Part shown: piece by piece, positions 37,301-64,000 of the stretch | Layout of the letters: the number at the start of each line of letters is the position of its first letter | How positions within the stretch are numbered: position 1 is the stretch's first letter | Assembly: GCA_001179505.1 (NCBI GenBank) | Contig: CDMY01000308.1 | Span: 63,637 to 127,636 of the forward strand | Source: Vitrella brassicaformis CCMP3155 | Taxonomy: Eukaryota > Protista > Chromerida | Length of the DNA stretch: 64,000 nt | Direction: 5' to 3' | Notes under the pieces: model-generated | Seen by the model: the letters and a program-made list of their open reading frames with translations, nothing else | Databases searched by the model: none | Told to the model about the DNA's origin: nothing | Position numbers and translations under genes: made by a program

Positions 37301-37959
37301 GCTATTCACGTAGGTAAACAGAGAGAGGGTCAGGTGTATGGGATGTGATGTGTCATGAATTGGGCGAAAGAGTCGGGGTGTTCTGACAGACTGCCCATGT
37401 GTGTCTGTGCGTCACAGTTTCCCAGATGGACAAATGCAGTGGACATCCACCCAAGTCAACCAGACAAGGCAGCTGAGTGAGTGAATGCCGTCAAGAAGTC
37501 AGGTGGATTTCTGAGCAGATTATGGAGTAAGTTACATGGACCCTCATCGATCTGTTCGCCTTCGTCTGATTGACTCAATCCACCAGCCATCATGATCAAT
37601 CCGACGGTTCGTACGAAGGGATCGTGTGTGCACGTGGCCCTTCCGATCAAATGACTCAACCCTTCACCAGTTGTTGGTAAACCAAGCTGATCCAACTCAT
37701 GCACAGAGAGAGAGAGAGAGCCGACACAGCCGGGCGATAAAAGGACGATCTGTGTCTATCGTATGTCCGGCCAATCATCCCACATACGAGGATCAATCAC
37801 AGTGAATAAAGTATCGTACATCATACAGACAGACAGACGGATATGTCTGGCGTCCGTGATTGCAGAAGCTGATGACAACGATAAAACACCACACACATAA
37901 AGTGCTCACGGAAGATACACATCGAGCAGGCCACACACGGACGGAAAATCAATTTCTCT

Positions 37960-40129
37960 TCAAACGGCTGAAGACGTCTTGAAGAAAGCGGCGAAACAAT
38001 CCCTTTGCACCACGCTGCGGGGTACCAGTCTACATAACATGAAGCAACCATCGTTTCCTCCGCCTTCCCCGCCTTCACATGACTGACTGCCCCTACTTAC
38101 CGGATCAGCGCTGATCTCCTCCAGCGCTCGCCCAGGAGGAAGCTCAAAGACGTATTCCTGGAACAGCAGCCGGTCCTTGATGTCCTCGCGTGTGGTCGGG
38201 TCCTTGGACCAGAGCGGCTTGATCGAGCCGCCTTGTGGGATGGCCCACACGATGCGCCAGGTCTTCTTGCCATCCCCGATCGCTGGGCTTGTCCTCAAGT
38301 TTGTGATCAATGATTGGTCAAATCCACTGGCTGAGTGCTCGCTGTTGGCGGTGACTTGGATGAGGTAGACGACGTCCTCAGCGCTGTCGATGTACAGCGA
38401 GTCGATGACCGCCCAGTTCTTGGCCGCGGGCACCCAGAAGCCAGGCTCGCGCACGTTGGCAAAGGGTCTTGTCTTGATTCTGCTCCGAATAAACACACGG
38501 GGCTTGTTGTCCTGCTGCGTGGTGTCCAGCGAAACCCGGATCACACCATTCAGCTTGTCCTGCTGCGTCTGCATCCTTGATGCTTGAGAGGTCTTGTTCA
38601 CACGTTCCATATGGTGGTTGAGCGGCTCCAGACTTATCGGGCGCTTGGTCACTCTCAGAAACTCGTTGACAAGGCCCTCAAGCAGCGCCCCTTGCTGGCC
38701 GGCGATCTTTCTGGGGTCCATGATGATATCGAGCTCATTACTCAACTGCTGCTGGGTCAGATTTCGGATGAACGTGCCGAGGATGTAAGGCGAGCGCCAG
38801 ACGACCTTCCCAAAGGTGTAGGTGCCGTTGGTCGTGGGATCGAGCGACATGAGAAGGCTCTGAGGGACATTGTCAGCTGGGACACCCCTTGGAACTTCTC
38901 CGCCCCATCGTCGAATATCGTCATACTTGACGGACTCAATGACACTGTCCACATCGGCCTTGAGCTGAGACAGAGGCGTCAGGTAATCGCGGATGATGCC
39001 ACCCGCATAGAGGCGCTTGTCATCCATCTGGTCGAACCACTCGGTTCCCTCAAGGGCTGCAGCAACCTCATCCTCAGTCCAGGTGGGCATGAGCAGATTG
39101 AGTGTGAGCTCTTTCTTGAAATCGTTGTAGTTATCCTTCCTCGACGACGCAGCCAGCAAGACGCTGCCCCGCCAAATACCAAAAAGGGCACCTTCCAAGC
39201 CTGCACCACACACACACACACACACACAAAGAGAGAGAGAGAGTGTGTCACTCTCACACAGGCAGGCGTGCAGCCCCTCTCCCTTCCGCCCTGAACTAAC
39301 CGTCGATCAGCAGCCAGTCGCGTTGTGATGAGTCCAGCGGCTGCGTCTTTTGTAACTGGAACAACGTCTCTAGCGGGTCGCGGAGTCTGACAAAGCCGTC
39401 CTTCGACAGCTCATACACCTGCTGGTCGACACTCGATGACCTGAATGAAAACCAGAAGGAGCGGGCAGGTCACATCACGTCTGGCCGCCAGCAAATCTGT
39501 GCTCACTGACCTCTTGGAGTTGTCCACGAACCAGATCTTGAAGTTCTTGCCTCGGTGCATCTCGCCTTTCAGCACGGCCAAGAAAAAGAGAAGAAACCAA
39601 GACTTGCCGACGCCCGGTGAGCCACGCAGCAGAACGTTGAAGTAATTCGGATATGAAGGCGTCTTCCTGTTCAAGTTCTTCTGCCTGTCCATAATGATCT
39701 TGGCGATGTCAACATAGGCCTTGCGGACCAACAACTTCTGACCCCCCGTGAGTGGCAGCGTGATTGGTGCTGCCTCGAGGTTGATGGGATCCACTGACTC
39801 CCAGTATGGTTCAAGTTCGAGTCCGACCCTGAAAATCGGCGGCATGGCTTCGGCGAAGGCCTGCAAGTCAGACAGACAGACAGACAAGACGAATGAATCC
39901 ACGAAATGCACTCACTCATCATGCCCAGCTGTGTCGGTCACTTGTGCACCTTCTCATCTGGCTCCTCTGCGTGAAGGGCAGTCGCCCTCTGCACGGGGCG
40001 ATGCGTCGGGCGCTCCAGGCGAGTCGGCAAGGGAGCAAGAAAGGTGAGACGAGCGGATTGGCGCACGCCAGCCACCGTATGAGCGGAGGCAAGGGACGCA
40101 GTCAGGAAAAGGGAAAGCGCAGATGCCAT
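37960..40129 (-). CDS. Crinkler/RHS-type P-loop NTPase + restriction-endonuclease-fold protein with N-terminal signal + transit-like peptide
   Basis: Exon 1 (39950-40129, 60 aa) MASALSLFLTASLASA..RATALHAEEPDEK. Exon 2 (39511-39860) has Walker A LLRGSPGVGKSWF; exon 3 has Walker B-like WLLIDG; exon 4 has LMPTWTEDEV, YAGGIIRDYL and WVPAAKNWAVIDSLY..YLIQVTANSEH (about 38335-38435). All junctions in phase. The 3' end may be spliced at 38098. Confidence 0.8.
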
Positions 40130-40689
40130 AGCGGTGACCTGTGAATGAATGCAGAGAAAGCGCACAACACGACATCTGGCATGAGATGTCATTCATCAAC
40201 GTCGTAGATCTCCTCACGAAGAAAAAAGCTCCGCGAGCTCGAGCTCGCGGCAGTTCCAACGGGAGAAGAGCCTTCCCGATCTCCCATCTCCCTTTCACCA
40301 GGTGGATGACGCAGGTGTGCACAGATCTGCTCTTGACCCATCCACTTCATCTCATTCATCCATCTCTCTGTGCTGTGAGCAGGTGTGTGGTTTCTTTCAC
40401 TCTGACGACTGGGAGGCCTGACGAGGGATGAATCAGAGGATCCTCATCCGTCAGCCCGCTGCAGCAAGGTCTCTCTGTGGCAAGAGCTCTTGACGCAGAC
40501 AATTCATGGGATCGGTTTGGTGTGGTGTGCCTTCAGGTGACGGCGGAATCGATTGCTGCTGGACGGCTATAGGCTGGCGGTGAGGAACGAGGCTGCGTAT
40601 ACGTGGACCCGCCGGCCATTGTTCATTGTCCTGGTCATGTGCTTGTGGTGTGGTGTGTGCAGTGAGCCCCTGGTTGATTGTGTGGCCTG

Positions 40690-43600
40690 ATGGACACCGA
40701 TGACGGAGGTGCTGCAGGCGGGCGGCCGTGTGTCGATGGCAGTGGCTGCCGCGACGTCCTGCACAAGATACACTCGGTGAGGGACGAGGGGAAGAGGAGG
40801 GCTCACCAGGTCCATCGCTGTGTTGGGATTGCCTGGCAGGTCGCCTCTCAGATTGCCTCTGATGCTGAGAGGGCAGAGCACATCATAGCCACACACGCCG
40901 ACGACAAATCACAGGTCCGCACGGAGACACCACAGTCAGCCGAGCTGCACAACTTGCTGGGCGTCTGTTTCGGTGGTGCAGGATGTTGCATCGCTGGCCG
41001 GCAGCCTATCCACCATACTGGACACCCTCACCGACGCCCAGTCGGCCCTCGGCAACGAGTTGGCACAGATGTCCAGTGACCGCGACACACACGTGAGGAT
41101 TGCATGGGAAGACCGATAATGGCTCACAAAGGCCGACAAGCAGTGACGTCCATCTCTCTCTCCTCTGTGCGTGTTTGGGTCAATGTCAGCGGATGGAAGG
41201 CGACGGCAGGCTGTTTCGCTGTATCCACCGGGTGGGCGGTGCAGTAGGAGGACGGGCGGCAGAGCCAGCAATGCCGGTCGGTGTGCACATGGATACACAG
41301 ACAGACAGACAGACAGACAGATGGATGGACCAGCATCTATCTGTGATGCTTTCTTGGTGTCCATCCAGGTGCCTGTTGGCGACGGAGGTAAGCGCGCGTG
41401 TGTAGCTATCAGCCCGGCTGCCGCTGCTGCAACTGCGAATAGCAAAAGTACACCAACCACACAGAGGTGAAAGTACTGAGAATCCCATGTTGTGCTGTCT
41501 TGTGTTTTGCCTTTGCCGGGTGGGTCGGTTGGTGTCTGCGGTGCTGCAGCAGCGACACCAAGGCCGATGAACAAACCAAAGGTGACACTAAAAGTGGCAA
41601 CCACTATGACTGCCTTCACCAGTGTGCACATGTGTGGGTGTCAGAAGTACGGCCGTCCGAGTCTGTCTGGTCTGCCTGAGGACGTCTTCAGCCACCTGGA
41701 CTCCTTCGTCACCAGCATCGTCGTCTCCCGGCTGGCCAAGGTCAACAAGGAGACTCACCAGAAGGCCACCGACCAGAACCTCGGCATGTTCCGGCACTTC
41801 ACCCTGACGAGCGACGAGGAAGAGACCTACAGAAAGGTCAAGGGCGTCAGGGAGATGCAGCACATGGTGAGAGGGCTGGGATTGGGAGGGACACATGGGT
41901 GGGTGGGTGGATGGATGGATGCTTTCTGGTCTGTGCGTGTGGATGCAGGGGAAGATCCAGACGGCCCACATCGAGAGCTCCAGTGTGCCCGCGTGTCTGT
42001 CGAGGTGCCTGGAGGCGTCGAGGCTGACGCTCACCCGGCTGACCGTGATAGCCCCTGACCAGCCGCGCTCTGCCCCGCGGGCCCCCATCGATATGCGTCG
42101 TGCGCCTGCCCTGCCCACCCACTTCCCAAACATCACACACATGACCATCCAGTCGGCTGCATGGCTCAGCCACCTCAGGTGAGTATGAGGCGTGTGTGTG
42201 TGTGTGTGTGTCTTTCCAAGCACCGTCACTCTTTCTTTCTGTGTGAATGCGTTTAGGTATCGTCAATGGACTTTTCCCAACTTGAGGGCCCTTCGGGTGG
42301 GCAGCATCTACGAGTCGGCCGACCTGATGGCACTGCTCGACGCGATGCCCATGATCGAGCGGCTGGAGGCAGCGTGCATCGGCTTCTACGACGAGGAACA
42401 GGAGGCATTTCTCGCCCTTCTCGGTGGCCGCCCCCACCTGACCACCGTCACCGGCCTGCAGACCTACATGGAAGAATGCTACCCCAGCTACAGATTCGGC
42501 TGTGAAAACGAGGTCAAGAAGGCCGTCGATGCCAACTGGAGCAAACAGGACAACGAAGGTGACTCGAACCGAACGAACAAATGATGCGTGAAGCGGATGA
42601 AATCTCGGTGCCGTGTGCGCCCTTCCTCCCTCTCTCGGATGAATGAGTGCAGGTGTGCCCAAGAAGCTGGGGTTCGTCGTGCCGCGTTTGTGGATCGGTG
42701 TGGACTACGGCCAACAAAAGGCGGCCGATGTGGAGGCCTTCAGAAAGTGGGCCGAGGAGGTCAACTGTGAGGTCAAGTGGGAGCTGGGCGAAGACGGCGG
42801 CATGAACATCGACTGCAGCAGCAGCGGTGCCACTGCCCTCCCAGCGCCCGGCGGATTCTTCGGCGATTTCGCGACGCAGATGGCCGCCAAAGCAAAAACG
42901 GTGAGCAAGCAAGAAAGCTATGAAGGCCGAGCGCATCTGTTCATGTCTGTGTCATGTAGGTGTGTTTGTATGTGGGTGGCTCTCCGCTGCACGAGAGCTG
43001 GCGCGACAAGCTGGCCTTCCCCAATGCCAAGAAGCTCTTCATCGAAGACCATGAAATGGGCGTGAGCGCCTCAGAAGCGGAGGACAGCATACCCACCTGG
43101 CTCGCCAACGATGACGCAGACGGAGAGAGGGCGGCGTGTAGTGGGTTCCCCTCTGTAGAGCACCTGAGTGTCGGTTTCCTGTCATACCTCTCTGTCGATG
43201 AGATGTGTGAGCATCCGAGCAAGCTGAGCCTGCTGCTGGGGGGCCTCAGGTCAGTCAGGCAAGTCAGCTTCTCTTCTCCCATCTGGTGCCTCTCGGCTGC
43301 CTGTGAGCTGCTGTCCTACCTGCCTGTCACACACCTGGATGAGGTCACCTTCCTCGACACACCTGAAGAGAGCACCGGGGTGCACATAGAGGGGGGCCTG
43401 GGGTGTCCACGCATTCAGTGCATGTGCAGTGGGAGGATGAGTTTTGACAGAAAGGCGCGTGTGCAGTCGTTTCTGCGGCTGGTGCTCACACTGCGGCCAG
43501 TCAGTGTGCGTCTCTCTCTCCGTGCTGATAGGAGCGATCTGCAGGGGGCCGATGAGGCCCCTAGAATACGCGATCTGCGCGGCTTTGCGTGTGAGTGTTT

Positions 43601-63551: not shown

Positions 63552-64000
63552 ATGCACACCGCACAGACCGCCGCAGATCAGATCTCCGCAGAGAGGCTCA
63601 CAGGAAGGCCACACACGCAGTCAGGAGCAGCCAGAAGGACAAGTAAGCTGACATATCTCTCTGTTTCTTTGTCTGTCTGTGTGTGCAGGTCGAGATGGCG
63701 TGCTGCGCCAAGACTCCGAGGCTCAATTTGGATGCCAGAGGATTGCTCTCGATGAAGGCTGTGCTATGCGCCGACCAATCGGCCTCTGCGGAACTTCTCG
63801 CTGACCCCTCAATGCCTCTCCCATTTTTGTCCATCTCTGCAGGCCCGTGTTTGGCTCTGTGGGTGCGGCCCGGTCCATCCGACGCATGCTTCAGGTGCAT
63901 CAGCTCATGGGCGACACAGGTGCCAAAGGAGAGGGCAGCAGCACACACACAGCCAGAGCACCGACGCTGGCGGGATTTTCACCTTTCTGACTGTAGGGTT
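63552..64000 (+). CDS. Possible 5' exons of an unidentified gene running out of the window
   Basis: Splice-like donor gtaag (63642) and TG-rich acceptor (63688); no recognisable motif; frame unresolved. Confidence 0.2.

Follow-up and report, generated by a model that had tools for sequence, protein, structure and literature searches.

A Crinkler/RHS-type NTPase with a nuclease-like domain behind a presequence-like leader exon in the chromerid Vitrella brassicaformis

Crinkler/RHS (CR) proteins are understood as toxins, which a ubiquitin-like (Ubl) header carries into the cells of another organism, where nuclear DNA is the target. Why free-living eukaryotes keep such proteins is an open question, and a gene on contig CDMY01000308.1 of Vitrella brassicaformis CCMP3155 poses it in a concrete form: the gene is transcribed, it encodes all the conserved catalytic-type residues, and its header has been swapped for a presequence-like leader. 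It lies in a stretch of 64,000 nucleotides (nt) (positions 63,637 to 127,636 of the contig; hereafter the window), which holds no second copy of it, and its product is a protein of 616 amino acids (aa), P0001. What would a nucleoside triphosphatase (NTPase) coupled to a nuclease-like domain do behind such a leader, and where? We found that the window gene is the only fully intact and transcribed member of a small family of header-less CR proteins, which has duplicated recently. To the reading that this CR NTPase-nuclease has been re-addressed to the chromerid plastid by a bipartite leader exon replacing the Ubl header, and acts there on organellar nucleic acid, we give a probability of roughly one in four.

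The gene is on the minus strand and has five exons. Its coding sequence (CDS, 40129..37949; coordinates are those of the window) adds up in phase to 616 codons, and the concatenated exons are identical to the annotated V. brassicaformis CCMP3155 protein P0001 (100% in a search with exon 4). An earlier interpretation made from the letters alone (the sequence-only reading) had placed the gene at 37960-40129; the CDS continues to 37949 in a fifth exon. The motifs which it quoted (GSPGVGKS, WLLIDG, MPTWTEDE, GGIIRDY and KNWAVIDS..IQVT..SEH) are all present, in phase, on the minus strand. Spliced contigs from two RNA-labelled runs, X1 and X2, were aligned to the window and contain the coding joints 39950|39860, 39511|39440, ~39301|39200 and 38101|38029, all of them GT..AG on the minus strand. 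One contig of 1614 nt spans 38249-39198, 39300-39436, 39507-39859 and 39949-40121; another spans 37647-38029 and 38101-38193, and the 3' untranslated region (UTR) reaches at least to 37647. Exon 1, which has 60 codons (40129..39950) and ends in phase 0 ahead of GTGCAC, is joined to exon 2, because the joint 39950|39860 is seen in these contigs, which confirms that a separate 60-aa leader exon is spliced onto the core. Two further runs, X3 and X4, retain introns and are DNA-like. The depth spikes and odd joints seen at 37702-37835 and at 39846-39979 fall on (GACA)n and (GA)n microsatellites and are assembly noise. Microsatellites of the types (CTGT)n, (CT)n(GT)n and (GA)n are found in introns 1 (39861-39949) and 3 (39201-39300) and in the 3' flank (37700-37860), with 10-40 fold depth spikes, many false joints and loose ends in read mapping.

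The nature of the core was assessed by three approaches. A profile of Vitrella sequences, searched against 1.8 billion representative proteins, retrieved 148 proteins at E<=1e-3, which are mostly eukaryotic and 400-650 aa long. These homologues share the motifs R.CY..L, G.PGIGKS, W.L.DG, SP....Y..F.K, MP.W...E and GG.PR, and a C-terminal motif P...NF..ID ... LFQ.T....H (the latter part also written D...Q.T....H). Among 80 homologues scanned, four carry the Pfam Crinkler header PF20147 (E 2e-23 to 3e-5) and four match the RHSP model weakly (best E 4.7e-6), with two inspected members below the cut-off. The header-bearing proteins P0071 (a Crinkler of Phytophthora fragariae), P0085, P0101 and P0141 were recovered by hmmsearch against the 1.8 billion proteins at E 2e-5 to 7e-4; Physarum and Voromonas, a colpodellid related to Vitrella, supplied others. 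When the Vitrella clade was aligned by hhalign with six homologues (four with a significant Crinkler header match, one with a marginal match and one with none), the probability was 99.4% (E 4e-21) over 340 columns covering both domains, from LLVRKAYVDI via Walker A and Walker B to FWVPAAKNWAVIDS...LIQVT...H. An AlphaFold model built from 104 homologues (predicted local distance difference test (pLDDT) 82.8, predicted template modelling score (pTM) 0.80) was compared by Foldseek with AFDB cluster representatives, and query residues ~77-580 aligned with entries named 'Crinkler family protein' (7e-24), 'Crinkler (CRN) family protein' (4e-18) and 'RHS' (7e-17), as well as with Trypanosoma cruzi entries. 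R106, G140, G143, G145, K146, D223, S242, P262, W264, E268, G290 and R294 are nearly invariant in 104-110 homologues, and all are present in P0001. Because profile search, hhalign and Foldseek agree, membership of the two-domain core in the CR group, as the sequence-only reading had claimed, is well supported, and it is very probable that the core is a CR-family NTPase plus nuclease-fold module without a header. The absence of a Ubl/LFLAK header, also foreseen, is borne out by the lack of any PF20147 match for exon 1 or the whole protein even at E 10. PF07999 (RHSP) has no match in P0001-P0004 at E 10, and the likeness of P0001 to RHS is structural only.

Within the NTPase domain (Table 1) lie ASSRKDNYNDFKK, MPTWTEDE and GGIIRDY (R294). 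Walker A GSPGVGKS is encoded at 39623..39600 (K146 codon 39605..39603), and WLLIDG at 39316..39302 plus a split Gly (D223 codon 39304..39302). When the whole model was compared with the PDB, Foldseek returned only generic STAND/AAA+ NTPases (NLRP9, Avs4 and NSF), and a separate model of the C-terminal domain was therefore needed. Modelled alone, this domain reached a pLDDT of 89.2 and matched the C-terminal domains of Crinkler/RHS AFDB models (Foldseek E 5e-7 to 4e-5). The top 35 VIA-align rows are almost entirely PD-(D/E)xK nuclease domains, including those of N.BspD6I, McrC, the N-terminal nuclease of Avs3, HamA, SdaI, LlaBIII, Cap4, CdiA-CT, FokI, MspJI and SgrAI. A PDB sequence search with the C-terminal profile gave chance matches only. 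Alignment of 77 homologues shows nearly invariant E, P, D, Q and T in this domain, and in the model E398 (codon 38679..38677) sits on the first long helix, D490 (38403..38401) starts one strand and Q505-x-T507 (38358..38356 and 38352..38350) ends the next, which are the places expected from the motif. The C-terminal fold is probably that of a restriction endonuclease (REase), in line with what has been published on CR proteins. CR-NTPase and CR-REase have reportedly been defined as families. Between the two domains, the middle region may occupy the helix-turn-helix (HTH) position of the NTPase+HTH+REase architecture, which is that of most Phytophthora CRN C-termini (PMC5289972).

The leader that precedes this core starts with MASALSLFLTASLASA (residues 1-16), which is uncharged and weakly hydrophobic and has AxA at 14-16; the N-terminal 22 residues as a whole are uncharged. 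Residues 17-54 have a net charge of +5, with six Ser/Thr, six Ala, four Pro and one Glu, and are followed by an acidic stretch; this segment is net positive, hydroxylated and acid-poor, as a transit-peptide-like region should be. AlphaFold predicts a helix at residues 2-19 and disorder at 20-58, and the core begins ~15 residues past the leader. Feature neighbours of the leaders of P0001 and its paralogue P0002 in ESM-Atlas are small nuclear-encoded plastid precursors (CP12, RbcS, PsbW, diatom HHL1-like, cryptophyte phycoerythrin alpha and DUF3611), whereas the N terminus of the leaderless paralogue P0152, used as a control, returns RHS and Crinkler clusters and no plastid precursors. These language-model neighbours give weak support to a transit-peptide-like leader. 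The leader gene is absent from the supplementary tables of PMC6668581, which give predictor scores for reference proteins only. A search with residues 1-62 among proteins of 339-1078 aa found the leader in P0001, P0002, P0003 and P0165 only, and within this range no other protein family has it and no donor gene appears. The survey of paralogue leaders suggested by the sequence-only reading thus extends the leader to three other copies, but not to the 44%-identical P0152.

Whether the leader is truly N-terminal depends on the 5' end of the gene. The 1614-nt RNA contig begins at 40121, i.e. inside exon 1. The sequence-only reading had pointed to an acceptor at about 40140, implying an upstream exon; this acceptor exists and is used in paralogue models, but the transcript of P0164 reads through from 40192. 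P0164, a 637-aa MMETSP transcript protein, is P0001 with 21 additional N-terminal residues from an in-frame ATG at 40192, and because its open reading frame starts there, the transcript is unspliced over the acceptor-like CAG at 40141-40139. The segment from GTGAGG (~40214) to this CAG (40139) is ~90% conserved in all four leader-bearing loci, with similarity dropping sharply upstream of the GT, and it holds two upstream ATGs, at 40196 (out of frame) and at 40192 (in frame). Paralogue gene models remove the equivalent segment by splicing, and a paralogue RNA contig (40050-40207) retains it. Owing to 4-nt indels, two of the four loci do not have the upstream ATG in frame, and the frames of further-upstream exons differ among the loci as well; an upstream coding exon burying the leader was therefore rejected as a conserved feature. 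The start codon at 40129 (MASALS...) is the only one conserved in frame in all four and, on this comparison, is the most likely translation start. A basic N-terminal extension of 21 residues from 40192 is possible; it would leave the hydrophobic segment unburied and would place a positively charged n-region ahead of this segment.

The family to which the gene belongs is young and in part decaying. Its leader-bearing copies, of which P0165 is the fourth (76% identical overall), are spread over three contigs, one of which carries two copies. Similarity between the loci extends over ~37850-40230, a dispersed unit of ~2.4 kb that comprises the gene with its introns and ~100 nt of each flank; introns are as conserved as exons, some being 0.99 identical between two loci. 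Only microsatellites flank this unit, with no terminal, direct or inverted repeats and no element ends, and the idea of a mobile cassette was rejected on these grounds. The more distant P0152 has an intact Walker A motif, an intron just upstream of the core and a different short 5' exon, so that the 5' exon has been exchanged within the family. Exon shuffling as the origin of the leader, proposed by the sequence-only reading, is conjectural: the leader itself is confined to four close paralogues and has no donor within the 339-1078 aa range searched. Pairwise dS among leader-bearing paralogues is ~0.18-0.22, with a core dN/dS of 0.75-0.95. Under homologous exon borders, exon 3 of the P0002 gene (L001:10001-12311) contains an in-frame stop and exon 4 of the P0003 gene (L002:6001-8318) a 1-nt deletion, defects that the annotated models mask by skipping 24 and ~28 residues, respectively; both are probable pseudogenes, or assembly errors. 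In P0002, P0003 and P0165 (loci L001, L002 and L004) the Walker A Lys is replaced by Leu (GS.GVGL[ST]), and P0165 additionally has Q505K and H512Y. Diversifying selection as a cause of the high dN/dS was rejected once the stop codon and frameshift had been found; together with the Walker A replacement, they explain the ratio by decay. Among Vitrella paralogues, GKS is kept only in the window copy and in P0152, and the window gene is the sole leader-bearing copy with an open frame and all conserved residues (K146, D223, E398, D490, Q505 and T507). No other segment has a dN as low as that of the leader, and per site the core has significantly more non-synonymous differences (Fisher p 0.01, 0.05 and 3e-5, in comparisons that are non-independent).

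The best explanation of the whole, which we hold tentatively and with somewhat less than even confidence, is a CR NTPase-gated nuclease whose leader acts as a sorting signal, most likely to the plastid. The NTPase would gate or load the nuclease-fold domain on nucleic acid, and E398, D490 and Q505, together with T507 and H512, may form the active site. As an N-terminal sorting signal, the leader would direct co-translational entry into the endoplasmic reticulum (ER), from where the onward route would most likely lead to the four-membrane plastid, given that the stretch following the AxA site is basic and hydroxylated. In the plastid, the protein could cut or process plastid DNA or RNA. The parts of this explanation differ in strength. 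That the leader works as a sorting signal, whatever the destination, is on balance likely; that this destination is the plastid, as leader composition suggests, is rather doubtful.

Several observations weigh against this explanation. Neither the exon pieces nor the whole protein had a match above noise in Pfam or NCBIfam. The Foldseek PDB list for the C-terminal domain is nuclease-flavoured, with E >= 0.2 throughout, and the best VIA-align Z to solved nucleases is 5.2, at 6-13% identity, which is below the tool's safe level. The family as a whole has Thr where (D/E)xK would have its canonical Lys, and given this and the low Z, catalytic competence as a nuclease is not assured. In the leader, the best 10-residue Kyte-Doolittle mean of P0001 falls below the cut-off of 2.0 (~1.9 by hand; 2.1-2.9 in the paralogues). 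The hydrophobic segment announced by the sequence-only reading is thus there, with its AxA, but its core is marginal and weaker than implied. His, not Phe, follows ASA in all four paralogues, where an ASAFAP-type site would have an aromatic residue at +1; this is weak evidence against, because Phe at +1 is less conserved in Vitrella than in Chromera (PMC6668581). The ESM-Atlas scores are 0.43-0.52 against a lead threshold of 0.9, and the method is unvalidated on protein fragments. The in-frame ATG at 40192 in the P0164 transcript is a further complication. Finally, patchy gene conversion is a plausible cause of the lower leader dN, the 5' flank and some introns being equally or more conserved, and the argument from dN is weakened by the pseudogene-like state of two of the compared paralogues. 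Of the plastid targeting put forward from the letters, composition and low-scoring plastid-precursor neighbours stand, whereas the marginal core, His at +1 and the upstream ATG do not fit.

In a rival reading, the leader is a fortuitous 5' exon with no sorting function, fixed in one subclade of a decaying, transposon-derived selfish family, and the protein, if made at all, would be cytosolic or nuclear as other CR proteins are. Loss of the Walker A Lys in three of the four leader-bearing copies, a stop or frameshift in two, the core dN/dS of 0.75-0.95, dispersal as gene-sized units of ~2.4 kb, the upstream ATGs in the transcript and the marginal hydrophobic core all agree with this, and header degeneration is documented in CRN-like genes of free-living eukaryotes (PMC12957317). 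It accounts less well for the window copy, which keeps its conserved catalytic residues, its open frame, transcription and correct splicing, for a MASALS start that is the only one in frame at all four loci, and for the low leader dN; nor were flanking direct repeats or mobile-element ends found. We would place its likelihood anywhere from doubtful to tentatively credible.

If the leader does sort the protein, its destination need not be an organelle. Were it a simple ER signal peptide with a linker or pro-region behind it, P0001 would be a toxin that is secreted or kept in extrusive organelles and directed at competitors, grazers or parasites, in keeping with the classical view of Crinklers. 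Conflict effectors are what CR proteins are, some with a signal peptide before the header (PMC6131194; PMC5289972), and the birth-and-death evolution of the family and the AxA site at residues 14-16 are in keeping with such a role. In the distant homologues P0026, P0105 and P0118 (from metagenomes or transcriptomes), a strongly hydrophobic, signal-peptide-like N terminus directly precedes the FW..L core start, with no Ubl header, so that header-less, signal-led CR cores are not confined to Vitrella. Yet a protein without the Ubl header has no known entry into a target cell, secretion has no need of a 38-residue basic, acid-poor, hydroxylated stretch that resembles a transit peptide, and the hydrophobic core is weak; we consider secretion unlikely. 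A mitochondrial or dual-organelle presequence, in which the whole 55-residue Ala/Leu/Ser/Arg-rich, acid-poor N terminus is a matrix-targeting peptide, is less likely still. Such a role would suit a segment with six Arg against a single acidic residue and a helix predicted at its N terminus, and plastid and mitochondrial presequences overlap in composition (PMC6668581). Against this, the first Arg is at residue 23 and residues 1-22 are uncharged and hydrophobic, as would rather be expected of a signal peptide, the neighbours found by the language model are precursors of plastid and not of mitochondrial proteins, and an upstream start would give a basic n-region and then a hydrophobic stretch, again signal-peptide-like.

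Each outcome would be informative. Delivery of P0001 to the plastid would mean that a conflict nuclease has been recruited to organelle biology, with genome copy control, uniparental elimination or organelle defence as examples of its role, and would make it the first organelle-targeted CR protein; no report in the literature searched places a CR core behind a presequence of organelle type, and none joins Crinkler and Vitrella. A merely secretory leader would reveal a header-independent delivery route, whereas with a functionless one the family would neatly illustrate how a selfish module decays by birth and death. The sister copies within this genome are either leaderless or deficient in catalytic residues, and a reporter system based on a relative is tractable for Vitrella.

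The features of the gene are collected in Table 1. A basic amphipathic helix at the C terminus, KGLFRRFLQDVFSRLKRN (residues 598-615, 37952-38008), comes from the last exon; it is kept in P0003 and P0165 and could be a membrane-binding tail, a nucleic-acid-binding tail or a localisation signal. Upstream of the leader gene, at 40780-41300, spliced joints in X2 (40915/41052 and 41092/41190) and coverage reveal a neighbouring transcript.

Table 1. Coordinates of the leader gene and of the predicted domains of P0001 in the window
Feature	Position	Strand	Basis
Intron-like GTGAGG...CAG segment directly 5' of the start codon; 5'-UTR or 5' intron	40139..40214	-	Four-locus alignment
Exon 1: leader, 60 aa	39950..40129	-	Sequence; exon 1-exon 2 junction in RNA contigs; AlphaFold
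Intron 1: phase 0, holds (CTGT)n microsatellite	39861..39949	-	Joint 39859/39949 (cut +1), runs X1 and X2
Exon 2: start of CR core (YWESV, LLVRKAYVDI) and Walker A GSPGVGKS	39511..39860	-	Sequence, homologue alignment
Exon 3: 3' end is Walker B WLLIDG	39301..39440	-	Joints in RNA contigs; D223 nearly invariant
Exon 4	39200..38101	-	Sequence, RNA joints
Intron 4: phase 0	38030..38100	-	Joint 38029/38101 in X1 and X2
Exon 5: 26-aa basic amphipathic C-terminal tail and TGA stop	37949..38029	-	Sequence, RNA contigs, AlphaFold helix 598-615
P-loop NTPase domain (predicted), residues ~100-300, exons 2-4	38971..39743	-	pLDDT mostly >85; Foldseek PDB
Middle helical region and beta-hairpin, winged-helix-like (predicted), residues ~301-389	38704..38970	-	Model secondary structure
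C-terminal restriction-endonuclease-fold-like domain (predicted), residues ~390-590; E398, D490, Q505-x-T507, H512	38101..38703	-	Domain model

Among known systems, P0001 is closest to those Crinkler (CRN) effectors of oomycetes and fungi that have an NTPase+HTH+REase C-terminal module (PMC5289972), with which it shares a P-loop NTPase, a helical/winged-helix linker and a C-terminal nuclease fold in the same order, motifs throughout, an hhalign probability of 99.4% and full-length Foldseek matches down to 7e-24. It differs in that CRN effectors have a signal peptide, known on some of them (PMC6131194), and a LFLAK/DWL (Ubl) header, whereas P0001 has a 60-aa presequence-like leader on its own exon; identity is only ~20%, and Vitrella is a free-living photosynthetic chromerid rather than a pathogen or symbiont. 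CRN homologues do occur in free-living eukaryotes (PMC5289972; PMC12957317). In trypanosomatid RHS proteins (PF07999/RHS_N), the NTPase and C-terminal domain match in the models F9WKD4, Q4CXQ1 and Q4DD28, and these too form a multigene family with many pseudogenes, but P0001 has no PF07999 match at E 10 and no RHS_N region, and its locus has neither a retroelement insertion hot spot nor subtelomeric features. AACRNL of free-living animals (PMC12957317) likewise keeps a CR-derived toxin module after loss of the translocation header; its effector, however, is an ADP-ribosyltransferase and not an NTPase-REase, its header has degenerated rather than been replaced, and the lineage is unrelated. A more distant likeness is to Avs3/Avs4, McrBC and Hachiman HamA, in which an NTPase is likewise coupled to a nuclease: the NTPase of P0001 resembles that of Avs4 and NLR-type STAND proteins, and its C-terminal domain the nucleases of McrC, Avs3 and HamA. 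This likeness is at the level of the fold only (Z <= 5.2, 6-13% identity), and domain order and sensor parts differ.

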